Part shown: piece after piece, positions 4,567 to 54,800 of the stretch
Layout: each line of letters begins with the position of its first letter
How positions within the stretch are numbered: position 1 is the stretch's first letter
DNA from: Podarcis melisellensis
Lineage: Eukaryota
DNA: 64,000 bases
NCBI GenBank assembly: GCA_964234715.1
Contig: OZ174278.1
Strand: one strand, 5' to 3'
Notes under the pieces: generated by a model
Told to the model about the DNA's origin: nothing
The model's database searches: none
Seen by the model: the letters and a program-made list of their open reading frames with translations, nothing else
Made by a program: the position numbers and the translations under genes

Positions 4567-7500
4567 CACATGTATTTATAACACTAGCTCCCAGTTTTCA
4601 AACTAGTTTGGCGAGGAGAGGAGATGTTGTGAGAGCAACAAGGTTTGTGTGCAGAAGCTCCAACATTCAGCAGAATCTCAGGTAGTAGCTGCTGTGGAAA
4701 AACTTTGCCCAAGTCCCTAGAGAGTCACTGCCATACTGAGCTAGATGAAGCAATGTTCTGTCTTGATATAAAACAATTTTTTTATGTTGGAGATGAAGGA
4801 TGGGAGCTCAGTGGCAGAGCATGTGAGGTGCATGTAGAAGGTCCTAGATTCAATTCCTGTCACCTCCAGCTTAAAAGATCTCGAGTAGTAAGTCCTAAGT
4901 GCCACTTTCAGAGCTAAATTCAGTAATTATCAGAGCCTATATAAAGGAAGCTTCTTTGGCTGGTGAACCCACATCATGTCTGCAACAGGCTACTTTGATG
5001 GAACAAGAGCAAAACTTGCCTTATATCTGCGGATAGTCAATTTTCTCTTTCTGGTTTCAGTATTTTGCTGAAGCAGAGCATTGCACATCTGGAAAACCTG
5101 CTGCATGACAGCATCCTGTCTCAGGTCATCACGGCCCTTTAAGAGATACAAAAAAGGCAATGGTATAGAAATGGCATCTGCTGAACACTACAACAACTTT
5201 ATGTTATTTATATTTATTTGGAAGTGAGGGAAACTTTTATTCAAAACAAGTATGCAAAGTACTGTAGACTTAAGCAACAGGAAAAGTATCCAGACAATTG
5301 AGCAGTACTGTCACTTTATACTTTGTCTTCTGGGATCACTCAGAAGTTTTGAAATACATTGTACATTTAGTAAATAAGTAAATATATATTTAGAAATGTG
5401 TAAGAACGTATTTCCATGCATTAGGAGCTTATAAATTTCCCACGGTTTTACTTTACAGCAGCTCAGAGAAATAAAACATATCAACTTCCACCAAAGGCAA
5501 GGTTCACACCACAGAACATGGCATAAGTTAAAAACCCAATATTCTACATTCAATTTACAGGTCTCATGGTTTTTAAATCAAAAAAGACACCTCTCTAGCA
5601 CGTGCAACACACAGAACATACCTTGACAAGTTGCCTCCTCTCTTTCCCATCTGATCCAACACAGTCTATTATTTTTGGTAGATTAAGGCCTCCTGCTAAG
5701 CGAAATTCTGGCTTGAATGACCTTATTGTAACCAAATTTTCATACTTCCCACTTGGATCCACCTAAAATCATAAATATATTTAGGCGCTGCTGTATCATG
5801 TTCACCACAATATTACATGTTCACTACAGTACTGATAGCCATTTCTCTGTCTGCTAGAATGAAACATGTGCAGGTTACAGACTCTGCTAACCCAGAAATA
5901 GTACCTTGGGTTAAGAACTTTGCTTCAGGATGAGAACATAAATCTTGCTCCGGCGGTGCGGCAGCAGCGGGAGGCCCCATTAGCTAAAGTGGTACCTCAG
6001 GTTAAGAACAGTTTCAGGTTAAGCACGGACCTCCAGAACGAATTAAGTACTTAACCCGAGGTACCACTGTAATCCCCGCTAATATGACTATGTAAGGATT
6101 ATTACTGAGATAAACCAGTTTCATTTACCTTGATTTCCATGGTGGGTACAACAACATCATCTAGATTCTTTAGCTTGGTGATAGGTTGATCAGAAGGGAT
6201 ATTTATGCCTCCTGCATAAACAACACACAAATTACCTTAAATGCCATTACTAACATTTGTTGCTATAGGAACTCCTGCACACTGGACTTCAAACAATGAT
6301 GAAACTGTTTCTAACATGTCTCTGATATTACAGAAATTATTCTAGATTTTCTAGTGTGGTGCCATCTACCCCTTTGCCTTTCCACTGTGTATCAGACATT
6401 CTCTACTATTTTAACTCTTTTTAATATATCTAATTGTACTATAAATATTACATTGTAAATTGGCCCATGCCCAAATACCAAAATAACCAGAGTACTGCCA
6501 ATTTGCTCTGAGGCAAAGGCTGTTACAGATACCTGCACAAATTGGATACAGTTCACTGGCTAACAAATATCATTACAGTGGTACCTCGGGTTACATACGC
6601 TTTAGATTACAGACTCTGCTAACCCAGAAATTGTACCTCAGGTTAAGAACTTTGCTTCAGGATGATAAAAGAAATCGCACGGCGGCAGTGTGGCGACAGC
6701 CGGAGGCCCCATTAGCTAAAGTGGTGCTTCAGGTTAAGAACAGTTTTAGGTTAAGAATGGACCTCCGGAACGAATTAAGTACTTAACCCGAGGTACCACT
6801 GTATAGCCTATAAATTGCACAGTTAATTTACTTTCAACAAAACATCCTGGAGAAGCAAAACAATATTTTCCAGCTATTTATTACACAGTATGAAACTGAA
6901 GGATTATTGTTGATTTTCAACTCCCACCGCAATTATCCCCATTTTCCATATTCTTACTTCTCTCTGACTTCCAGCGAGTCGCGTCCATGTTTGCTAAAGT
7001 GATATAAGCATTGCAGAGGGCTTCGACATTTGTCACCATATCAGCTCTTTCATGCTTGATGATGTTAATTATATTGCTAGCAGCTTCCATCCGTTCCTAT
7101 CGGTTGAAAAAAGAATACTGGTAAAAGCGAATGTTTTACTTACAATCTGTTGTTGTTTAGTTGTATCCGACTCTTCGTGACCCCATGGACCAGAGCACGC
7201 CAATCTACAATCTACTTTAGATTACAATCTACTTTAGATTAAAACAATTCAGAGCTCTGACAACAAAGGAAGCATTAGGAAACTGGGCCAACTGCTGGTG
7301 GGTAACTTTACTGCAGCCCTGACATTATGAAAAACAGGCCCCAACTACAATACTGTCCATGCAAACACAAGAACCTTGCCGCTCCCCCAGCCTAAAGCAC
7401 CCCAGAAGCAGGTGAATGAAAGTACCTTGTCAAGTTGAGAAGTTTCTTTTGGTGTGTTTTTTGTTTGCCTGCTTCTTGCTTCTTCCGGCTTTGCGAAGAG

Positions 7501-19500: not shown

Positions 19501-22500
19501 TTTCACATTTCACTGCTTTTCATATTTATGTACAAAATATACATAATACAACTGGACCCTTCAATATGAAAATTAAGAATAAAGGTAGTATTCTACTGTT
19601 TTAATATGTTGCGTTTTCTGTGTGATTTCCACTACAGGGACTCTAATTTGTATAGAATTTAAGGGCTAGGCCTAAGCATTGCAGTGATAGCAACAGTGTG
19701 TATAAACAGGGCAGGGAAAACTGTCTCCATCACATATATTCCCTGAATTCTTATTGCTTAATAGCAGCAATAGCTTACAAAACAAGAGGGAGATCTCACC
19801 CCAAATTTCTTTGAACTTAGAATTTCAATTGATGCTGTTATACTGTTGAGGAGCTTACTGAGCTTGGAGAACTAGAACCAGTACTATTTTAAGAAAACAT
19901 TTTGAAAAACCAATACATTCCAGTTTTAGAAATACTCAAATGGCAAGGATTAGTTAGCAATTTAGGAAAGCAGATACTTTTTACAGGAGACAAAGGAAGT
20001 AATGCAAAGATGAAGTATTATTAACTAAATCTTGTTTTTTAAGCTTTAATAAAAGTAATTTTTTAGTAAATAATACTATTTTTAAAAGCTAACAGAGCAA
20101 TATCAGGTTTTTTAAACAGGTTTCTAGGTGCTATCTTTCAACATTCCAGTCAAAATTTCTCTGAAGTTATTTACTGGTATAAAAATATTAAATGTTTATG
20201 TATTTGCAACATAATCTAATTTTTACTAATTCTCTTCAAAAGAACTCTACTCATTTGAATAGCTAAATTTCTTACCCAAGGCTCTATTGGTAGAATTAAC
20301 AGCTGTTTTTGAAAGTTGTAAGAAACACGCTATCAGCTTCACTATTATACAGTCCTTTGGGTTTTCTACAGTTGGGTGTAAAAAGCATTAAAAGCAATAT
20401 TAAGTGAATGAATTATTTATTATGGTCACAGACCAATAAAATTAAATATACAATTAAAATTATATGATTAAAAACAGACATTAAATATACAGATTACACA
20501 TGTAAGATTTACTAATGCTACTAATTTAAACATTTTTCATTTGAAGACTCAACCCCCCCAAAAAAACAAACCCCAACTACCCCACAATATCCATATCAAC
20601 CATGTGTGTAAAGTTGTAACCAAACAAATTAAAAAAATTCTTCTTAAATGCCAGTGCTTTGAAGTACACAGAACCTGATAAAAGGCAAATGAACTTATAT
20701 TTACAGAAACTCACAGGACTTGCTGAACTGCATTTCAAACATCATATTAATTAGTCTTTAGTATGATACGCCAACACTATCCCCAATGACACAAGGCAAA
20801 TCATCAGTGAAAGAGGAAGAGAGGCTCTAGAAAGTAAGGAGATCAGCCAGGGCAGATTTATTTCTATCTTTGCTTTCTCCAATGCTATTTTCTGAAGTGT
20901 GTCGTGAACAAAAAAAAAAAAGGACAGCACTTTTAAAATTGTGGTACCCACTGTGAAATGCATTCTCAATGTTATGTTTCGCCTAGCGCCTTCCTCAACA
21001 TCCTCTAGATAAGAAACAGTTTCTCCCTAATCCTTCGACTGATATTTATTTTTTCTTATTGCATTGTTCATTGTATACAAAACAGAAACTATACTGGTAT
21101 TTGGTTTAGTTCCTGGGTTGTTCATGCATCCATGCTGCCCTCAGGTTAGTCATATCCCCCCCCCCCCGGCAATATGCAGTACTCCCAGGAATTTAAAAAG
21201 CAGTCTCAAACCCATACCGTGAAATTCTTTCATAAGGTCCTTCATTTGTTCTTTATGCTCCTTAAGTTGCTTACGCAAATCATTTAAACCTTCAAGTCTC
21301 GTTAACAGTAGCGAATCAGAGGTATTTATGGACAGAAAATGGTTAATTTCCTGCAAACAACAAACAGAATTTATAGTAAGGATACACACAATTATTAGGT
21401 ACTGTGAATTATGAATTATGGTGCTGGAGGAGACTCTTGAGAGTCCCATGGACTGCAAGAAGATCAAACCTATCCATTATGAAGGAAATCAGCCCTGAGT
21501 GCTCACTGAAAGGACAGATTGTGAAGCTGAGACTCCAATACTTTGGCTACCTCATGAGAAGAGAAGACTCCCTGGAAAAGACCCTGGTGTTGGGAAAGAT
21601 GGAGGGCACAAGGAGAAGGGGACGACAGAGGACGAGATGGTTGGACAGTGTTCTCAAAGCTACCAGCATGAGTTTGACCAAACTACAGGAGGCAGGGGAA
21701 GACAGGAGTGCCTGGCGTGCTCTGGTCCATGGGGTCACGAAGAGTCGGACACGACTAAACCAGTGTTTCCCAACCGGTGTTCCGCGGCACAATAGTGTGC
21801 CGCGAGATGTTGCCTGGTGTGCCGCTCCGGCGGCTCCTCTGCGGCGGCTACAGCGGCAACCTCGGGCGGCTCCTGAGGCGGCGAAGGCGGCCCAGCGGCC
21901 GGAGGCGAAGACGGTTGCGGCTGCTCCCGACGCTCACCAGCGGCCTCCTCTTCCTCGCCGCTGCTGCTTCGCGGCTTCTCCTCCGCCTCCTCCTTCTCCT
22001 CGCCGCCGCCTTTTTCGGGCTCCGGCTCCTTCTTCCCCTCAGGCTCCTCCGCGGAAGGCCCGTCCGGCAGCTCGGCCTCCGAGTCGCTGCTGCCGCCGCC
22101 GCCTCTTTCTCCTCCGCTACCGCCGCCGGGCTCTCCTCCTCCTCCTCCGGGCCCCTCGTCCTGGGCGGGCAGAGCGGCGGGGGTCTCGGCGGCCGCCGGG
22201 CTCTCCTGGGTCTCCTGCATGGGGGGCTACGCGGCCTTCCTGCTCGCCTCACACGCGCGGCGCACGAACAGGCAAGGCGGCGCGCTGGGCCGAAAAGGGG
22301 GAGGGAGGGGGCACAGAGCGCGCAGGCGCGCGCGCAGGGGAGGCGCCCTCTTGCCGGGCTATGTGCGCGAGAGCGGACCCGGTGGCGAGTCTCGCGAGAG
22401 GGGCAGGGACCAACTCGGCAGACGAGAGGGGGAAGGAACGGATTCCAAAACCGGTGTCTTGCCGCGTTGTATATGTTAATTTCCTATGTTAATGGGCTAG

Positions 22501-25500
22501 GACAGGGTTTGCGATCGGTTAACGCCCAGTTATGCTTTCCCCCTAGGAATTAGGCGTTTCGGTCTTGAGGTACGCTCGCTTCACACCCCACTTGGAGGTT
22601 CCCCGGCAAGGGGGAGGGAAAAAATTTGAAAGTTACACTTTCGTGCGTCCCTCCCGGCGTGACGCTGCGCGCTGACGTCACGGGGCTGTAATGGTGGTGT
22701 GCCTCGAGATTTTTTTCATCAAACAAGTGTGCCTTTGCCAAAAAAAGGTTGGGAAACACTGGACTAAACAACAACAAATTATCTTTTAAAAAATGTAGAG
22801 ACTCTGAATGGCTGAGTAGTGTGTCAATTCTTATCTGGAAATTAACATCACTAAGATCAATGAGACTTACTCATGACTAGATATGAATAGAAAGACCTAA
22901 CCCACTATGATTTCAAAGGCTTGAAAAGTGATTGTATTACCTCCAGGAGAGAAAATCCACCATTACTGTATTTTATTTTCTGCTGAACAGCACGCAGGTC
23001 TTTAAAAGCAGGGTGATCTGGAAAAGGATCCAGATGTTTGATTGCCTGGTATAGGTTTTCATTGTCTTTGTTATCTATCACTAGATATTTTAATAAGCCC
23101 AAGACCTAAACGAAAAGGAAAACAAAAGTGGAGGAACAAAGTAATGAAACCACTCTAGAAAGTCTTCACGTTTTTGCATGGAAAAACAGCAGTCACAATA
23201 CTCTGATCCACAATCTGCAGACTAGCTGCTCAGCAGTTACTTCCCTCAATGCTTGTGCATTTTCTTTCCTTACTGCACAGAAACCCATACCCAAACAGAA
23301 GATCCTGCACTTATTTGAATGCAAAATACTCCCCACTTCCATCCACTCCTTTGACGCTGAGCCTGTTTATCAGGCTCAATGGCCAATGTCAGGGAAGACC
23401 CTATATTTAAACTATAATCCCAAACTGGTTTATTAGGCAATAAGGCCCACTGAAGACAATAGGACTTACTTCTGAGCAACCATACCAAGGACTGTGCTGT
23501 TAATTCCTCAGTTCCCATGTGCATTTCAATATGCTATGGGCACAACAGAGGAAAGAGTGAAGATGATGTGCACGAGCCCAAGGCCTGCTTTTGACTTCAC
23601 GGTGCATAAAGCAGAAAGGCAGAAGTAGGATATAAATATCCACAGTGGCCACATGTGCACATCACAGTAAGACAGGGTTGCTGGCTTACTGTGATTTAAA
23701 GGAAATGAACAGCATGCTAGTGCATGCTGTCTGACCACTCCTACTTTACTCTTTTAAATGTAGATGTTAGTGACAAAAGGTTATGTATGGACCTTCTAAG
23801 ACTGAATGCAAACTAACTATTCTGACATCCCAAATTCCTCTATATACTATGTACGGCCTTTCACAGCCTGCAGCTTTTACATTGAAATATATCAGCTGGC
23901 TGCAAAAAAAAATAGCAAAACTATTTAACAGAATTTTATAACATTAGTAATATAATTATATGCAGCAGATTAGCGTAACACATATCAGTTCTTGCCTTTA
24001 AATATATCTAAATGCAAATACTGCAGCCCACAGCTCACAGATTTAATGACACAGACACGCTAAGACTCATAATTAAGATGAGCAAGCATAGAGCCCTGAT
24101 TGTATAATTTACTTCTTCACTGGCAAGCATTTTGAGCATAATTATCCATATTCGCCTAAAAAGAAAAAAAGAAGCATTTAAATAATGCAGATAGTTAAGT
24201 TGTTCAGCTTTCCTACCAATTAAGTAGACATTTAAGGCAATTTAAGGCAGACATTTAGTTAAGCTTGGGAAAGAAACAGGAATTCATCCCTGATCTTACA
24301 CTGAGTGTCTGAGATGCAGCACAGGTCAAGGACAAGATCTTACTCCTTGCAGAGGAGTGAGGAAGAGAACTGGTGACCAAAATTTGTGGGCATACACATG
24401 TAATGGCAATGGGATCCAAAAAACTGTGCAATTAATTGTGCACTTCTTAAAACAGCAGCTACTAAACCTCAAGATTTTGAGATTGAAGGGATCTCAGAAA
24501 TTTGGAATATTGCCTGGGGCTTTCAAAATACTCTTGTGCATACCTTATTACAGTAATCCTGCAACTTACACACACACAGTTAACTTGTGTGTATTCAGCT
24601 TTAGGTGATTGGGATTTTTTTAAAGAGGTAAAAAGAGTGGGCATCCGGGGGGGGGGGGGACTTCAGCAATCTCACCTGCTATTGCTCCCTACGTTGTTTT
24701 GACTATATACAGTTACACGGTTTTTGTTCCATGCACTATCCTTGGAACATAACCCCTGAATAAGTTGTGGGTTTCAGTAATTGCCTTTTAAAACTGTTAC
24801 TAATTGATTCTTGCATTTATATTGTTCGCTTCATTAGGTGTTCTCAGGTGGAAAGGCGGAGTACACATATTCTAAACTGACCCAAGTAAACCTAAATCAA
24901 GCAAACATAAAATGCCTAGCAAGTGCAGCTGATTAAAACTTACTTCTTCTTGGGTTTCAGGTTGTTCTCCAACTATGGGAATCAGGGTCCCCACAACAAC
25001 ATGGAGGTGACTCCCTAGGGCATCTCCACAATATATTACTGCTGTGTGGCAAACACGACTGAGAAGGTCACAACATAGCAAGAAGCTCCGGAGGGATATC
25101 CCTTTGAGAGGAACAGGCCTAAAACACATTTTAAAAAATGAAGCAGCTTAGGGGAGCTACGATACACACTTTAATCAACACAGTATAACCAGACAAGGTG
25201 GTGATGTACAAATGATTTTTACAACAGGAGAAATTGTCCTACGCTCCCCTGTCTTCCCACTTCCCTCTCCCTCAAATGAAAGCAATGCCACTTTTTCTCA
25301 GGATGTTGAGGAACCATTAGTGAGCACTCTTTGAGTCTGCTCAGCCAACCAGCTAAAAATCCACCTAACAGTTACCTCATCCAGCCCACATTTTACCAGC
25401 TTCTCCACAAGAATATCATGGATGCAGTGTATCTTGATTTCACTAAGGCTTTTGAAAAAATTCCTCACGATATCATTGAAGGTCTTTCTTTGAAAGCTTA

Positions 25501-50200: not shown

Positions 50201-52177
50201 TCTGGACAATCAGGGCAAACTACACATGATCACAGTCACAACATTTCTCAGGCGGGAAAAGCACAGCACAACCCTGCGGCTGCTGTGCTCACTACTCTGA
50301 CAAGCGGGAGGGAAAGGAAAAAATAAACACTGGGTGTGCTGATAAGATATATAATAGCCATAAGGAAGAGGTACAATAGCTAGATGAACTGATACAAAGG
50401 GTGGCCAAGCAACCTCTGAACATTCACTTGATTGGGTAAAATAATGATATATTGCTTCCTTTCTAGTAATCAAAACACAACAAATAATGTAGCATAGCAG
50501 TAAAGAGACTGATAGGTGAACCAGAAGTCCTATGTTCAATTCATGGGTTCCTGAACTGTTTCAGATATTTGATGTCCTCCTTTCAACTTAAATTTCTAGA
50601 GTGATTTCTAACACAAAATGAAGTACCGTATTTTTCGCCCTATAGGATGCACTTTTCCCCCTCCAAAAATGAAGGGGAAATGTGTGTGCGTCCTATGGGG
50701 TGAATGCAGGCTTTCGCTGAAGCCTGGAGAGCGAGAGGGGTCGGTGTGTACCGACCCCTCTTGCTCTCCAGGCTTCAGGAAGCTATCCCCCCAGCCCGGC
50801 AAGCTCCCAGAGCGATGCCAAAGCTGCGTGCAGCTTCGCCATTGCTCTGGGACCCGTTCTGGGGGTTGGGATCGGGGGAAGCTCGGGCTTCCCCTGCCCC
50901 CAGCCGCGCAAGCTCCCAGAGTGATGCCAAAGCTGTGTGCAGCTTCGCCATCGCTCTCCGACCCGTTCTGGGGGCTGGGGTCGGGGGAAGCTCCGGCTTC
51001 CCCCGCCCGCAGCCTCGCAAGCTCCGAGAGCGATGGCGAACGTGCACGCACCTTCGCCATCGCTCTCGGACCCTTTCTGGGGGCTGCAGAAGCTTGGGCT
51101 TCCCCCAGCCCCGCAAGCTCCGGGAGCGATGGCAAAGGTGCACTCACCTTCGCCAGCGCGCTCCGACCCTTTCTGGGGGCTGGGGAAGCTCGGGCTTCCC
51201 CCACCCCCAGCCCCGCAAGCCACTCTGACTCCCATTCTGGGGGCTGAGAAAATCCCCCCCTTTATTCCCCCCCCCCCAAATCTAGGTGCATCCTATGGGC
51301 CGGTGCGTCCTATAGGGTGAAAAATACGGTAATAATTAATCACAGTTATAGCAAAACAGCAATCAGATAAAATGTGAGATAAAAAAGTGATCTAAAAGAA
51401 ACGGAAAATAAAATAATAATAATAATACCCCACCCATCTGGCTGTTTCCCCAGACACTCTGAGCAGCTTCCAACAAAATATAAAAAAATAAAACATCAAA
51501 CATTAAAAACTTCCCTAAAAAGGGCTGCCTTCAGGTGTCTTCTAAAAGGCAGATAGTTGTTTATTTCCTTGACATCTGATGGGAGGGCATTCCACAGGGC
51601 AGGCACAACTACCGAGAAGGCCCTCTGCCTCTTTCCCTGTAAGCTTGCTTCTCACATGTGATGGAACCGCCAAAAGGTCCTCAAGCTGAACGATGGGGGT
51701 GGAGACGCTCCCTGAAAGGTTTTCTCCTAGTGCCGAAAAGACAACAGACTCCCTAGATGGCCTTAGCTCTTACCCGGAACCTCTCTCCCAAATTTACAAT
51801 TTGGGGGCAAGTACAGACTTTGCTGTGTTATTGTAAGAATTACTGAGATGTTTGTCGAACGTTTGATATTCAACAAAGTTTAACACACATCAAAATATTG
51901 TACCTGAATACAGTATCCCAGTTCATCTGTTTGCCATTTTTGGAATCAGAATTTCGATCCAGCTGTTGAATTGTTTCAGAATCCCTGATGAGACGCTTGA
52001 ACTTCTCAATTTCCTTCTAAAAAAGTAATCCAGAATAAAGAATAACACTATCATGTTATTGTACTGTTGCATATTAGAAGTGCAGGAATGGTGGTTTATT
52101 ATTACCTTTCGGTCTGTGGCCTTGTCACTTTCAAGATGGCGGCAGCAAGCCAACAGGTCTTGGAGTGCAAAATTCAT
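48..52177 (-). CDS. ATM: ATM serine/threonine kinase (PIKK), spliced CDS of 61 exons (human-equivalent exons 2-62); last exon lies outside the window
   Basis: Exon translations match ATM from the N-terminal TAN motif ([34 protein letters not shown]) to kinase motifs ([34 protein letters not shown]); splice phases are compatible throughout; all introns GT-AG except one GC-AG. Confidence 0.98.
620..800 (-). mobile_element. Degenerate L2 LINE ORF2 fragment
   Basis: LHWLPV...LTFKTL..LEP.FLRE resembles the L2 ORF2 C-terminal motif; boundaries approximate. Confidence 0.6.
1200..1263 (-). CDS. ATM: ATM exon 61 (64 bp)
   Basis: [21 protein letters not shown]. Confidence 0.95.
1514..1628 (-). CDS. 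ATM: ATM exon 60 (115 bp), activation loop
   Basis: [37 protein letters not shown]. Confidence 0.95.
1717..1803 (-). CDS. ATM: ATM exon 59 (87 bp), catalytic loop
   Basis: [28 protein letters not shown]. Confidence 0.96.
2693..2858 (-). CDS. ATM: ATM exon 58 (166 bp)
   Basis: [42 protein letters not shown]. Confidence 0.95.
4193..4342 (-). CDS. ATM: ATM exon 57 (150 bp)
   Basis: [24 protein letters not shown]. Confidence 0.95.
4499..4562. repeat. (AG)32 microsatellite
   Basis: Direct reading. Confidence 0.98.
4795..4880 (+). mobile_element. tRNA-derived SINE head fragment
   Basis: agctcagtggcagagc (A-box-like) and ttcaattcc (B-box-like). Confidence 0.55.
5020..5136 (-). CDS. ATM: ATM exon 56 (117 bp), GC donor
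   Basis: [39 protein letters not shown]; donor AAG|GCAAGT. Confidence 0.92.
5622..5762 (-). CDS. ATM: ATM exon 55 (141 bp)
   Basis: [28 protein letters not shown]. Confidence 0.95.
5871..6069 (+). mobile_element. Tigger/pogo-like MITE, 5'-truncated copy
   Basis: Near-identical to 6576-6801; ends GAGGTACCACTG+TA. Confidence 0.85.
6129..6211 (-). CDS. ATM: ATM exon 54 (83 bp)
   Basis: [27 protein letters not shown]. Confidence 0.95.
6576..6801 (+). mobile_element. Tc1/mariner-superfamily (Tigger/pogo-like) MITE
   Basis: TIR CAGTGGTACCTCGGGTTA / TAACCCGAGGTACCACTG, TA TSD. Confidence 0.9.
6958..7096 (-). CDS. ATM: ATM exon 53 (139 bp)
   Basis: [23 protein letters not shown]. Confidence 0.94.
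7148..7202 (-). mobile_element. BovB/RTE LINE extreme 3' end
   Basis: Reverse complement of ccatggggtcacgaagagtcgga...aacaacaac. Confidence 0.8.
7426..7581 (-). CDS. ATM: ATM exon 52 (156 bp)
   Basis: [27 protein letters not shown]. Confidence 0.94.
7900..8290 (+). mobile_element. Degenerate L2 LINE RT fragment
   Basis: Remnants of AAF.T.DH.LL and SP.LFNIY.K.L motifs; boundaries approximate. Confidence 0.5.
8769..8873 (-). CDS. ATM: ATM exon 51 (105 bp)
   Basis: [18 protein letters not shown]. Confidence 0.93.
9992..10199 (-). CDS. ATM: ATM exon 50 (208 bp)
   Basis: [39 protein letters not shown]. Confidence 0.95.
10526..10743 (-). CDS. ATM: ATM exon 49 (218 bp)
   Basis: [35 protein letters not shown]. 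Confidence 0.95.
10858..10977 (-). CDS. ATM: ATM exon 48 (120 bp)
   Basis: [30 protein letters not shown]. Confidence 0.92.
11206..11370 (-). CDS. ATM: ATM exon 47 (165 bp)
   Basis: [11 protein letters not shown]...[23 protein letters not shown]. Confidence 0.92.
12407..12537 (+). mobile_element. BovB/RTE LINE 3' fragment
   Basis: Matches the 3' end of the other BovB copies; (AAC)n tail. Confidence 0.88.
12688..12922 (-). CDS. ATM: ATM exon 46 (235 bp)
   Basis: [23 protein letters not shown]...[12 protein letters not shown]. Confidence 0.95.
12985..13130 (-). mobile_element. Squamate tRNA-derived SINE remnant
   Basis: Antisense similarity to the SINE head at 4795 plus typical body; boundaries approximate. 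Confidence 0.5.
13264..13383 (-). CDS. ATM: ATM exon 45 (120 bp)
   Basis: [32 protein letters not shown]. Confidence 0.94.
13925..14029 (-). CDS. ATM: ATM exon 44 (105 bp)
   Basis: [22 protein letters not shown]. Confidence 0.94.
14206..14354 (-). CDS. ATM: ATM exon 43 (149 bp)
   Basis: [18 protein letters not shown]...[11 protein letters not shown]. Confidence 0.94.
14665..14767 (-). CDS. ATM: ATM exon 42 (103 bp)
   Basis: [20 protein letters not shown]. Confidence 0.94.
14852..14940 (-). CDS. ATM: ATM exon 41 (89 bp)
   Basis: [22 protein letters not shown]. Confidence 0.95.
15759..15867 (-). CDS. ATM: ATM exon 40 (109 bp, or 88 bp with the inner acceptor at 15846); S1981-equivalent SQ site
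   Basis: [36 protein letters not shown]. Confidence 0.88.
16435..16590 (-). CDS. ATM: ATM exon 39 (156 bp)
   Basis: [33 protein letters not shown]. Confidence 0.95.
17364..17451 (-). CDS. ATM: ATM exon 38 (88 bp)
   Basis: [29 protein letters not shown]. Confidence 0.93.
18110..18287 (-). CDS. ATM: ATM exon 37 (178 bp)
   Basis: [17 protein letters not shown]. Confidence 0.94.
18522..18698 (-). CDS. ATM: ATM exon 36 (177 bp)
   Basis: [25 protein letters not shown]. Confidence 0.94.
19039..19180 (-). CDS. ATM: ATM exon 35 (142 bp)
   Basis: [22 protein letters not shown]. Confidence 0.94.
19281..19452 (-). CDS. ATM: ATM exon 34 (172 bp)
   Basis: [16 protein letters not shown]...LFEDRELQW. 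Confidence 0.94.
20276..20365 (-). CDS. ATM: ATM exon 33 (90 bp)
   Basis: [23 protein letters not shown]. Confidence 0.9.
21218..21350 (-). CDS. ATM: ATM exon 32 (133 bp)
   Basis: EINHFLS...[14 protein letters not shown]. Confidence 0.94.
21761..22761. mobile_element. Non-autonomous hAT (Charlie-like) DNA transposon carrying captured GC-rich host sequence
   Basis: Perfect 15-bp TIR CAGTGTTTCCCAACC/GGTTGGGAAACACTG, 8-bp flanking repeat GACTAAAC, subterminal GTGTGCC repeats at both ends. Confidence 0.9.
21826..22220 (-). pseudogene. Captured first-exon fragment of a host gene; N-terminus resembles eIF3b (EIF3B-like, tentative)
   Basis: CCCATGCAGGAG start; [16 protein letters not shown]...PSSPPAA...[10 protein letters not shown] acidic/Pro/Ala-rich frame running into the TIR; low complexity makes identity uncertain. 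Confidence 0.55.
22941..23105 (-). CDS. ATM: ATM exon 31 (165 bp)
   Basis: [16 protein letters not shown]...LDPFPDH. Confidence 0.95.
24944..25118 (-). CDS. ATM: ATM exon 30 (175 bp)
   Basis: [20 protein letters not shown]...[11 protein letters not shown]. Confidence 0.95.
25297..25474 (-). mobile_element. CR1 LINE RT fragment with inverted segment
   Basis: Minus strand [34 protein letters not shown]; plus strand [18 protein letters not shown]. Confidence 0.85.
25749..25948 (-). CDS. ATM: ATM exon 29 (200 bp)
   Basis: [11 protein letters not shown]...[16 protein letters not shown]. Confidence 0.95.
26020..26578 (+). mobile_element. Tc1/mariner-superfamily (Tc2/pogo-like) non-autonomous element with 99-bp palindromic tandem units
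   Basis: TIR CCGTATTTTTCGCACCATAGG (one mismatch at right end), TA TSD. Confidence 0.88.
26952..27078 (-). CDS. ATM: ATM exon 28 (127 bp)
   Basis: [19 protein letters not shown]. Confidence 0.95.
27187..28138 (+). mobile_element. Polyadenylated retroposon of unidentified family (copy A), L1-type insertion hallmarks
   Basis: 20-bp TSD GAAATACTGATTCATTTCTC (27167-27186 / 28139-28158), AATAAA 28103, A-rich tail, ORF ending at 27678. Confidence 0.88.
28186..28265. mobile_element. 80-bp mariner-type hairpin MITE
   Basis: TA-flanked, CAGGGTGAGT..TTTAAAAGAGGCCCCGTGG arms in inverted orientation. Confidence 0.8.
28336..28588 (+). mobile_element. BovB/RTE LINE 3' fragment
   Basis: [18 protein letters not shown]...; (AAC)n tail; 11-bp TSD ATTCTATATCT. 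Confidence 0.92.
29448..29510 (+). mobile_element. CR1 LINE 3' end
   Basis: gggttggactcgatggccctt...ccaactctatgattcta, typical CR1 tail. Confidence 0.75.
29958..30076 (-). CDS. ATM: ATM exon 27 (119 bp)
   Basis: [16 protein letters not shown]. Confidence 0.93.
31256..31502 (-). CDS. ATM: ATM exon 26 (247 bp)
   Basis: [11 protein letters not shown]...[16 protein letters not shown]. Confidence 0.95.
31864..32024 (-). CDS. ATM: ATM exon 25 (161 bp)
   Basis: [22 protein letters not shown]. Confidence 0.93.
32456..32632 (-). CDS. ATM: ATM exon 24 (177 bp)
   Basis: YNRKSVLL...[12 protein letters not shown]...[10 protein letters not shown]. Confidence 0.94.
33440..33560 (-). CDS. ATM: ATM exon 23 (121 bp)
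   Basis: LFQD...[13 protein letters not shown]. Confidence 0.93.
33908..33966. repeat. (AAT)n microsatellite, tail of the adjacent L2
   Basis: Direct reading. Confidence 0.97.
33967..34226 (-). mobile_element. L2 LINE 3' end
   Basis: Antisense gccgccctgagccc...gggcgggatataaataaa tail motif. Confidence 0.7.
34456..34586 (-). CDS. ATM: ATM exon 22 (131 bp)
   Basis: [18 protein letters not shown]...FLAD. Confidence 0.93.
34689..34764 (-). CDS. ATM: ATM exon 21 (76 bp)
   Basis: [19 protein letters not shown]. Confidence 0.92.
35706..35849 (-). CDS. ATM: ATM exon 20 (144 bp)
   Basis: [12 protein letters not shown]...LTVVAAFW. Confidence 0.92.
35937..36019 (-). CDS. ATM: ATM exon 19 (83 bp)
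   Basis: [16 protein letters not shown]...LLKPL. Confidence 0.93.
36299..36498 (-). CDS. ATM: ATM exon 18 (200 bp)
   Basis: [22 protein letters not shown]. Confidence 0.94.
37515..37683 (-). CDS. ATM: ATM exon 17 (169 bp)
   Basis: Acidic GEVDLMEDD...DLFDD segment; phase 0/1 fits neighbouring exons. Confidence 0.88.
38658..38747 (-). CDS. ATM: ATM exon 16 (90 bp)
   Basis: [27 protein letters not shown]. Confidence 0.93.
38812..39913 (+). mobile_element. Polyadenylated retroposon of the same unidentified family (copy B)
   Basis: 18-bp TSD AAAACAGGATTTAATCAC (38794-38811 / 39914-39931), AATAAA 39887, A tail, ORF ending at 39363, 3' UTR motifs shared with copy A. Confidence 0.88.
40175..40300 (-). 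CDS. ATM: ATM exon 15 (126 bp)
   Basis: [21 protein letters not shown]. Confidence 0.92.
40693..40818 (-). CDS. ATM: ATM exon 14 (126 bp)
   Basis: [19 protein letters not shown]...KSKLFQK. Confidence 0.93.
40903..41119 (+). mobile_element. Tigger/pogo-like MITE (same family as 6576)
   Basis: CAGTGGTACCTC TIRs, TA TSD. Confidence 0.9.
42000..42225 (-). CDS. ATM: ATM exon 13 (226 bp)
   Basis: [13 protein letters not shown]...SEQLLSN. Confidence 0.92.
43111..43194. repeat. Compound (CA)18(GA)24 microsatellite
   Basis: Direct reading. Confidence 0.97.
43363..43458 (-). CDS. ATM: ATM exon 12 (96 bp)
   Basis: [18 protein letters not shown]. Confidence 0.93.
43842..44036 (-). CDS. ATM: ATM exon 11 (195 bp)
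   Basis: [11 protein letters not shown]...PPIL. Confidence 0.92.
44250..44294. repeat. Compound (TC)n(TG)n microsatellite
   Basis: Direct reading. Confidence 0.95.
44927..45298 (-). CDS. ATM: ATM exon 10 (372 bp)
   Basis: [12 protein letters not shown]...[10 protein letters not shown]...DREIWKIF. Confidence 0.94.
45396..45559 (-). CDS. ATM: ATM exon 9 (164 bp)
   Basis: [15 protein letters not shown]...[11 protein letters not shown]...SQNDF. Confidence 0.93.
45901..46064 (-). CDS. ATM: ATM exon 8 (164 bp)
   Basis: [21 protein letters not shown]...LMADICHQ. Confidence 0.95.
46395..46633 (-). CDS. ATM: ATM exon 7 (239 bp)
   Basis: [17 protein letters not shown]...HHPNGAK. Confidence 0.95.
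47412..47577 (-). CDS. ATM: ATM exon 6 (166 bp)
   Basis: KVLVARII...QTDGLNS. Confidence 0.93.
47779..47998. mobile_element. Older Tigger-like MITE
   Basis: TA-CAGTGAAACCTCAGTT...AACTGAGATTTGACTG-TA imperfect TIRs. Confidence 0.7.
48506..48706 (+). mobile_element. Tigger-like MITE, related subfamily
   Basis: TA-CAGTCGTACCT...GAGGTACCACTG-TA. Confidence 0.8.
49463..49627 (-). CDS. ATM: ATM exon 5 (165 bp)
   Basis: [10 protein letters not shown]...[14 protein letters not shown]. Confidence 0.95.
49839..49984 (-). CDS. ATM: ATM exon 4 (146 bp)
   Basis: [11 protein letters not shown]...[18 protein letters not shown]. Confidence 0.95.
50626..51329 (-). mobile_element. Tc2/pogo-like non-autonomous element (same ends as 26020, inverted) with ~96-109-bp hairpin units
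   Basis: TIR CCGTATTTTTC(G/A)CCCTATAGG, TA TSD; left end is the reverse complement of the right end of 26020-26578. Confidence 0.88.
51425..51712 (-). mobile_element. L2 LINE 3' fragment
   Basis: AAT tail followed by antisense L2-like 3' region; boundaries approximate. Confidence 0.6.
51904..52016 (-). CDS. ATM: ATM exon 3 (113 bp)
   Basis: [12 protein letters not shown]...NWDTVFR. Confidence 0.95.
52106..52177 (-). CDS. ATM: ATM exon 2 coding part (start codon; exon extends as UTR to 52214)
   Basis: GCC ATG; [24 protein letters not shown]; acceptor ttttcag at 52215. Confidence 0.95.
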
Positions 52178-52247
52178 GGCTCAGCTAAGTTGTAGATGCA
52201 CTCACAGCATGAACCTGAAAAGTGAAATAACAATAGGTTTTTCAATA

Positions 52248-53479: not shown

Positions 53480-54800
53480 TTCAGCCGTTCCCTTCCGACG
53501 CTTACCATTTTGCGCTGAAGGGCAAGGATGCCACACAAGCGACACTCTAGAAGGGGCACCTGAGGGGATCAGGGCAGCGGCCCGCGTGGCAGAGCCCCCC
53601 GTTCTCACAGCTCCGCGAATGGCGTGACCCCGCCCCCAAACCCCCACTTACACGACGACTTCGCACCGCCGCCACGGCAGCTGGGACGTCCAAGGCCGCC
53701 GTGACGAGACCGAGGCGGGTCGTGAGGGAGGGAGGACACCGGCCACCCCGGTCCCGCCTCAGAGGCCACGCGGGCAAGACGGCGGCATTCTTGCCAAAGG
53801 GGTGGGAAAGAGAGGAAGCGGCCGGAGGAGAACGAACGGAGACAACGAGAGGGAAAACGAAAGCGAAAAGATGAATGGGGGCGGGGGGGGAGCGAAGTGA
53901 GGCGAAGAGGCGGAGCGGCGAGGCTCGCGCCAGGAACGAGCGGTGGGCGGGGCCTGAAGGGACCCACAGCGCGGGCTTCTCGCTCCTTGCGCGCGCAGCC
54001 GCCCTCGCGCTCCGACGAACGCGGGGAGGCGTGGCTGCTCCACGCTCATCACCAATCGACGTGGTGTTTTCCATCCCACTCGCGTTCTAATCCCGCCCCT
54101 CCTAACTGCTACTCCTACCCCCGCCGCCGCCGGAAGCGGAAAAGCTCCTGTTTTCTCTCCTGCTGCCGGAAGTCGGTGGGCGGGACGGAGGCTGACGGCT
54201 GCTGATGCTGTTGTGGAGAGGTTTTTGGGCGCGGAGAGAAAGGGGAGCGCGGATAACCGCCTTTTCTGGGAGTTGCTGCCGCCGCTGCCCCGCTGGGGCG
54301 GGAAGGGTGCGGACCCCTCCCCGTCCCTCCCTCAGCCCCCCTCACCATGTTACTGCCGTCCGACGTGGCCCGCCTGGTGCTAGGTAAGCGCGAGCGAAGG
54401 GTTCCTCTCCTGAGGGGGCTTCCGGGGAAAACGGGCCCTTCTTTTTGCTCCTGGACCCGCCGTGTGTCTGTGTGTGTTTCTGGGGGCCTCCGAGAAGGGC
54501 AGGCCAAGGGCGCCCCTCGCATCTGTTTCCAAAGCAGAAGAGGGACACGCCCGCGACCCCCAACTCCTAATTCATCGCCCCTGCCGCCACACTGTTGTGT
54601 TATCTTGTGAAAAGCTTTGCTCCCTCTCCTTTGCATATTGCTGTTCTTTATTTACTGTTCCATAGCCTGCCCTAAAAGCAGAAATATTGTCGATCGTTAT
54701 TTTTGTAATTCACCCTCGCCGTCCTCCGCGGATCTAAAAGCTAAAGCGCGGTTAATTTTGTTTATTGCTTTACTCCACCGTAGCCCGTCTTCTTCCACTG
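53480..54800. promoter_or_regulatory. CpG island / ATM-NPAT bidirectional promoter, including probable non-coding ATM exon 1 (candidate donors at 53505 and 53651)
   Basis: Sharp GC/CpG rise between two divergent start exons; GC boxes (e.g. GGGCGGGG 53945), CCAAT 54052, ETS/GABP-type CCGGAAG at 54130 and 54166; minus-strand GTAAG donors; island boundaries approximate. Confidence 0.88.
54347..54383 (+). CDS. NPAT: NPAT exon 1 coding part
   Basis: CACCATG, MLLPSDVARLVL, donor GTAAGC. Confidence 0.96.

Follow-up and report, generated by a model that had tools for sequence, protein, structure and literature searches.

The capture of gene fragments by cut-and-paste transposons is common in plants, where Pack-MULEs have a reported preference for the GC-rich 5′ ends of genes. 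In animals, such captures are regarded as rare, and nearly all of them as single-copy. Here, we describe a hAT element of 1001 bp that carries a gene fragment (positions 21761-22761) in a 64,000-nucleotide stretch of the genome of Podarcis melisellensis (contig OZ174278.1 of assembly GCA_964234715.1), this whole stretch being referred to as the window. The element resides in the tail of a BovB-type long interspersed element (LINE) within an intron of the ATM gene. We consider it probable (roughly 0.72) that a Charlie/SPIN-like hAT element acquired a 766-bp piece of a host gene's 5′ end, that the chimera was spread in trans to about 10-20 sites, and that its copies are young and silent.

In a survey of 100 animal genomes, Tan et al. 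(2021, Nat Commun, PMC8277862) identified 370 young Pack-TIRs, of which 208 belong to hAT elements. Only 4 of the 370 are multicopy, three from Xenopus tropicalis and one from alligator, and for these the authors invoke FoSTeST, in which the template is switched when a fork stalls and the product then transposes (PMC8277862). In Pack-hAT-N8_XT from Xenopus tropicalis, a piece of CAPSL's 5′ untranslated region (UTR) is found at three loci (PMC8277862). The lizard element resembles these animal Pack-hATs in being a non-autonomous hAT, in having a middle that probably represents the 5′ end of a host gene, and in the multiplication of the same chimera at several loci. It differs from Pack-hAT-N8_XT (about 3 copies, 5′ UTR) in its copy number of about 10-20 and in a cargo that includes an upstream region and a coding start. 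Among vertebrates, hATs that carry gene fragments are rare, although they have been described before. Lizards or Anolis are not mentioned in the main text of the survey (PMC8277862), and no published description of a Pack-hAT or of gene capture by a hAT in lizards was found in our literature search. A hAT with a promoter and a coding start at 10-20 lizard sites would extend the few multicopy cases from animals.

The plant Pack-MULE and Pack-TYPE elements are also bounded by terminal inverted repeats (TIRs) and carry gene fragments, and their cargo, too, is amplified by transposition. Pack-MULEs differ in belonging to the Mutator superfamily, in their duplications of 9-11 bp, in their long TIRs, and in residing in another kingdom. 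While many plant Pack-MULEs are transcribed, the lizard copies look silent.

With respect to the transposon itself, the element is similar to SPIN and hAT-N3_AC of Anolis (Novick et al. 2011, PMC3014272). It shares with them a TIR of the type CAGTG(K)TTC(Y)CAACC, the YARNG terminus, an 8-bp flanking repeat that fits NYYTARRN, and the existence of short derivatives at very high copy number, a likeness that refers to the tabulated TIR and target consensus. Unlike the element described here, the Anolis families are plain deletion derivatives, and the capture of extraneous DNA has been reported in Anolis for hobo_AC and Helitrons but not for the SPIN/hAT-N3_AC group (PMC3014272).

Structure and copy number of the element

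The element is bounded by perfect 15-bp TIRs. The 15-mer CAGTGTTTCCCAACC has two exact matches in the window, at 21761-21775 on the plus strand and at 22747-22761 on the minus strand, while 0.18 matches are expected by chance when up to 2 mismatches are allowed. Both ends of the element are flanked by the 8-mer GACTAAAC (21753-21760 and 22762-22769), a putative target-site duplication. The TIR agrees with that of hAT-N3_AC (CAGTGGTTCCCAACCT) at 14 of 15 positions, starts with CAGTG and has the YARNG terminus; SPIN families are tabulated with the TIR CAGYGGTTCTCAACCT (both TIRs from PMC3014272). A transposase domain was not detected when the six open reading frames (ORFs) of the element were compared with Pfam, which returned only sub-threshold DUF noise. 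The first-pass annotation had described a TIR-bounded hAT without transposase; this description is borne out, and the element is filed as a non-autonomous member of the Charlie/SPIN-like group. Within the 64-kb window, no further family members were found with longer or relaxed TIR patterns, and a blastn comparison of the complete element with the window returned only the element itself, i.e. neither a second copy nor a parent locus.

The middle of the element, referred to as the cargo, differs in composition from its surroundings. The GC content is 0.70 for the interior overall and reaches 0.73-0.77. For the ratio of observed to expected CpG, the cargo has a value of 0.99 and the two terminal arms one of 0.97, as compared to 0.15-0.35 in the flanks. 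There are four copies of the subterminal motif GTGTGCC in the arms, all of them on the plus strand, and six in the remaining 63.8 kb of the window.

Public reads that correspond to 21650-22900 were used to delimit arms and cargo and to estimate their copy numbers. They comprise two DNA contig sets, X1 from organism A and X2 from organism B, a probable RNA contig set (X17) and a stranded RNA-seq run (X23). The right flank of the element in the window is single copy, its depth being 75 in X1, where a 2.5-kb contig is identical to the window, and 16 in X2. For the left arm (21776-21817), the summed depth is 9×10^5 in X1 and 2×10^5 in X2, and on the right side the depth in X2 steps up from 9×10^3 (22574-22615) to 4×10^5 (22700-22741). 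In contrast, the interior (21860-22573) is covered by only one contig per set, with a depth of 705 in X1 (21796-22333) and 315 in X2 (21797-22591). Expressed as depth ratios, which are rough and indicate orders of magnitude only, the arms are present in about 10^4 copies and the cargo in about 9 (X1) to 19 (X2) copies. This difference between a cargo of about 10-20 copies and arms of about 10^4 copies supports the earlier proposal that the middle of the element is an insert and not a sequence of the transposon family.

Other family members diverge from the window sequence at 21824/21825 and rejoin it at 22591, 22605 or 22689/22692. Forms without the cargo are present as well, as is evident from the joints 21824>22692 and 21825>22741. 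The depth of the arms and the junctions of the other members thus define a left arm of 65 bp (21761-21825, plus strand), which consists of the TIR and a subterminal part with two GTGTGCC motifs, a cargo of 766 bp (21826-22591, minus strand) with the 5′ end of a transcription unit, and a right arm of about 170 bp (22592-22761, plus strand), where the second TIR is accompanied by two further GTGTGCC motifs and a TGACGTCA site. Arms of about 65-70 bp each and an interior of about 870 bp had originally been assumed. The length of the left arm was correct, while the right arm is considerably longer and the cargo is reduced to 766 bp. High-copy transposon arm, with TGACGTCA in it, makes up about 100 bp of what had been taken for the promoter.

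The multicopy cargo contigs extend 30 nt into the left arm, i.e. across the left junction, and the right junction between cargo and arm is crossed by an X17 contig (22357-22648). As the junctions between cargo and arms are shared among copies while the flank of the window copy is single copy, the cargo has been amplified by transposition and not by segmental duplication.

We propose that the 766 bp stem from a well-expressed gene with a CpG island, namely from its 5′ end. The captured segment would consist of about 300 bp of upstream DNA, the first 132 codons and, between them, a 5′ UTR of about 65 nt, and may have taken the place of the element middle, probably via template switching during replication or repair. 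The resulting chimera would have retained the 65-bp left and the 170-bp right arm with their TIRs and GTGTGCC subterminal motifs, and a hAT transposase supplied in trans could then have carried it to roughly 10-20 places. One of these landing sites would be the BovB tail in the ATM intron, where the chimera is inserted in the same orientation as ATM.

Transcription of the cargo and apparent silence of its copies

Transcription was analysed with the raw stranded reads of X23, of which 12% were sampled. The depth is 75-125 on 21818-22237, drops to 34 on 22238-22279 and to 2 on 22280-22321, and is 0 on 22322-22531. First mates are located on the plus strand, with a 10- to 100-fold excess over the opposite orientation in 21818-22069. 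With the stranded protocols in common use, a first mate on the plus strand represents RNA from the minus strand. The data place a transcription start near 22280 on the minus strand, and the order of promoter, 5′ UTR and ATG at 22220, which had been read from the sequence in the first-pass annotation, is corroborated by the stranded RNA. The 5′ UTR of about 65 nt (22221-22285, minus strand), which is delimited by the drop in RNA depth, is devoid of upstream ATGs. The part of the cargo that precedes it (22286-22591, minus strand; GC 0.61, observed/expected CpG 1.04) is promoter-like and untranscribed, with an RNA depth of 0-4 in X23 (22280-22573). In three further studies, runs that we guess to be RNA contain about half of the sampled cargo words.

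The frame that starts with the ATG at 22220 (minus strand) has 161 codons; it passes the end of the cargo and crosses the arm before it reaches a stop at 21735-21737. Its first 132 codons (21826-22220) belong to the cargo, are overlain by strand-specific RNA, and would code for an acidic sequence rich in Ala, Pro, Gly and Glu. As four long ORFs overlap here in DNA of 75% GC, an open frame by itself is weak evidence for coding. The indel differences among copies and RNA in 21840-22111 are all multiples of three (7 of 7), which fits a coding frame and, equally well, slippage in triplet-like repeats.

A candidate splice donor at 21939 (CTG/GTGAGC, minus strand) was rejected because the RNA depth is flat across this site. 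The transcript therefore reaches at least the cargo boundary, and the capture breakpoint is within a first exon of at least 455 nt. A minor signal in the opposite orientation (15-40 as compared to about 110) is restricted to the part of 22070-22237 that is rich in GCC/CTC triplets, and is probably due to cross-mapped, repeat-bearing reads from other genes.

The transcribed copy differs from those that have been multiplied. In X23, 21908G is found in 84 of 84 reads, 22118C in 107 of 109 and 22119G in 99 of 109, while the multicopy DNA contigs from X1 and X2 as well as the window have A, T and A at these positions. The RNA variants are also carried by an X17 contig (21841-22359), which over 516 letters has 9 substitutions and indels that total 21 letters. 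Many other sites in the RNA are split at about 40-60%, for example 22085 (+GCCGCT or +GCTGCT), 22108 (+CTC), 22116T and 21984 (-12), and splits close to 50:50 look like the two alleles of one locus. The expressed locus is about 97% identical to the transposon copies but distinct from them, and is transcribed at roughly tens of reads per kilobase per million, which is a very rough estimate. The 10-20 transposon copies together account for no more than a few percent of the RNA, and they appear to be silent. The expressed variant locus is probably the parent gene.

The copies are not only apparently silent but also young. The window copy differs from the multicopy contig of organism A (X1) by 3 substitutions in 538 bp (about 0.6%) and by three in-frame indels. 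There are five differences to the X2 contig, and in all of them the window has T and the consensus has C; four of the five are CpG>TpG changes (22088, 22241, 22352, 22383). As the expressed variant has C at 22241 and 22352, the T in the window is derived. The intact CpGs had been taken to indicate either a recent capture or protection from methylation. A young age is upheld by the perfect TIRs, the substitution level of about 0.6% and the observed/expected CpG ratio of about 1, while protection is not supported, given that the arms also have a ratio of about 1 and that four of the five changes in the window are CpG>TpG. The intact CpGs reflect youth and not a special protected state. The CpG>TpG pattern points to methylated DNA which begins to decay and is consistent with silent copies, and it may well be methylation that silences them.

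Several points weigh against the proposed capture from a host gene and its amplification in trans. Copy numbers have been derived from rough depth ratios, and the RNA run (organism B) and the window (organism A) may represent different taxa. No single-copy DNA contig with the RNA variants occurs among those listed, except perhaps a contig of depth 10 at 22119. The target-site duplication is weak proof, being confounded by a doublet that is native to BovB tails (see below). RNA from the left arm shows a strand-biased haplotype (21809C, 78 versus 2 reads) at a depth like that of the cargo, and the expressed locus itself may be flanked by a hAT arm. In addition, protein database searches with the 132-codon frame were unproductive. 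No protein homologue was found with phmmer among 1.8 billion cluster representatives, there was no match at E<=10 in a word-indexed search which sees only proteins of 73-231 aa, the PDB sequences gave only low-complexity matches to WASF1 and Toc75 at E<=10, and a feature search of the ESM Atlas gave nothing usable. As the disordered N-termini of orthologues differ between species, the empty protein searches are no argument against a host gene as source.

One alternative that draws on the signal from the left arm is that the expressed locus is a hAT-flanked copy. This could be an older master Pack-hAT or, alternatively, the 5′ end of a gene which had a hAT insertion on either side and was moved as a composite. 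RNA from the left arm is enriched for a 21803T/21808C/21809C haplotype which is found in 3-6% of the genomic copies, and the depth at the strand-specific 21809C is 74-83 and thus similar to that of the cargo. There are 141 RNA reads that exit the left TIR into a partly consistent flank which is not BovB, and a loose end at 21826 is absent from the RNA loose ends listed, which are the best-supported ones. However, a comparable excess of one strand (211 versus 99) is seen on the right arm, despite zero RNA across 22280-22573, the gap that separates this arm from the cargo. As this excess is discontinuous with the cargo, such strand signals can arise from single unrelated copies among 10^4, namely those in expressed genes. 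Moreover, the allele pattern of about 50:50 and the stable presence across several studies fit an ordinary gene. We thus consider a hAT-flanked expressed locus to be rather unlikely. If it should be true, the cargo promoter drives a mobile, self-contained transcription unit at housekeeping level. We also regard as an improbable, tentative extension that in wall-lizard-type genomes a Pack-MULE-like hAT family repeatedly gains the CpG-island promoters and first exons of many genes, each at tens of copies, with the expressed variant being a mobile and autonomously transcribed unit.

Haplotypes in the arms were also compared between RNA and DNA. In the X23 reads over 21776-21817 and 22658-22741, a few haplotypes dominate which are rare in the genomic copies (e.g. 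21803T with 68% in RNA but 4-6% in DNA). Most of the RNA derived from the arms probably originates from a few of the about 10^4 copies, those within expressed genes.

Candidate source of the cargo

According to the proposal of capture from a host gene, the cargo should have a cellular source, and EIF3B had been named as a candidate. In its favour, the frame of the cargo starts with MQE and has an acidic, disordered N-terminus rich in Ala and Pro, there is a long first coding exon, a short 5′ UTR and a CpG-island promoter, and the expression level of the cargo locus is housekeeping-like. All of these are generic features, in which the cargo frame would resemble eIF3b. However, the search of the PDB at E<=10 did not return an eIF3b chain, and zero matches were obtained among the 1.8 billion representatives and in the word-indexed search (73-231 aa proteins only). 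The shared 5-mer SPPAA has about even odds of occurring by chance in a sequence rich in Pro and Ala, and a start with MQ(D/E) is found in on the order of a hundred genes by our own rough estimate. EIF3B is not supported as the source of the cargo, and we consider this assignment to be quite doubtful.

Flanking repeats and the ATM intron

The element is inserted into the tail at the 3′ end of a BovB-type LINE copy on the plus strand (21404-21760), the tail of which continues from 22762. The motif AGAGTCGGACACGACT, which we take to be the tail motif of squamate BovB elements, is present at five places of the window, in every case ahead of an (AAC)n tail. In the BovB stretch to the left of the element, the read depth is in the millions.

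The flanking 8-mers had been interpreted as an 8-bp target-site duplication. Although GACTAAAC is indeed identical on both sides, three of the window's four other BovB tails have GACTAAAC as well, natively followed by a near-identical 8-mer (GACTAAAC, GGCTAAAC or AACTTAAC). In the reads, hundreds of BovB contigs run on beyond 21760 with (G/A)ACTAAACAACAAC, so that most BovB copies show the doublet, and the flanks of the element, when joined, represent exactly the common BovB doublet. Due to this native doublet, the flanking 8-mers alone are no proof of a duplication. For the BovB tails at 7159, 12503, 28548 and 52896, the number of GACTAAAC-like units per 3′ end was found to vary between one and two. 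Because of this variability, insertions between units can mimic an 8-bp target-site duplication.

Insertion of a hAT element yields 8-bp duplications, and their absence would be anomalous. Tails with a single unit do occur (at 7159 in the window, and as a read joint 21750>22762), and the 8-mer matches the NYYTARRN target consensus of SPIN-like hATs from Anolis at 5 of the 6 specified positions (consensus: PMC3014272). For these reasons, we read the GACTAAAC pair as a duplication, which requires that the BovB tail had a single unit before the insertion. An element placed between two native units without any target-site duplication, by a non-standard hAT insertion or another route, would account for the doublet in three of the four other tails of the window and in most of the BovB read copies (loose ends at 21760). 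This is highly unlikely in view of the duplications that are typical of hAT insertion, the existence of single-unit tails, the agreement of the 8-mer with the family target consensus, and the perfect termini, which come from a family of about 10^4 copies.

Two candidates for the state of the locus without the element or in the other organism were discarded. Read joints 21760>22762 appeared to represent an empty allele, but they have only 18-21 letters on one side and are derived from other BovB tails. An X2 contig at 22778-22882 (92% identity), considered as the orthologous locus, is probably a paralogous repeat.

As to the middle of the element, it is most improbable that it represents the family's own sequence, i.e. 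the promoter and ORF start of a low-copy autonomous hAT kept in an internal-deletion derivative. Autonomous elements are likewise low copy, the transcription unit runs inward from the right arm, and the distinct expressed variant could be the autonomous copy. However, a CpG island of 70-75% GC with an acidic low-complexity frame is unlike the N-termini of hAT transposases (BED finger), there is no match to Pfam or to any predicted protein, and the expression is housekeeping-like with a 50:50 allele pattern.

The gene that hosts the element is ATM, which is encoded on the minus strand and for which peptides can be read across most of the window. The nearest ATM exon (21225-21359, minus strand) aligns to residues 1590-1634 of human ATM (E 4.6e-11). 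This alignment and the tail motif confirm that the element is nested in a BovB tail within an ATM intron, as had been annotated; the number given to this intron, 31, would agree with the ATM exon numbering. In the sense of ATM, the element is located about 400 bp upstream of the exon, and its ORF is read in the direction of ATM. With this copy, an ATM exon has a CpG-island promoter 400 bp upstream, in the sense orientation, and yet the copy appears to be silent.

Almost the entire ATM coding region appears to fit into about 52 kb of the window. A large CpG-rich block (53550-54650) is found directly upstream of the exon that codes for the ATM N-terminus (51926-52180, minus strand) and is presumably the (bidirectional) promoter island of ATM. 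Another TIR-bounded element (50621-51333) is located towards the 5′ end of ATM, in one of its introns. It has inverted ends of about 28 bp (TACCGTATTTTTCGCCCTATAGGA... and its complement), and its GC-rich interior contains 4.2 copies of a 109-bp tandem repeat.

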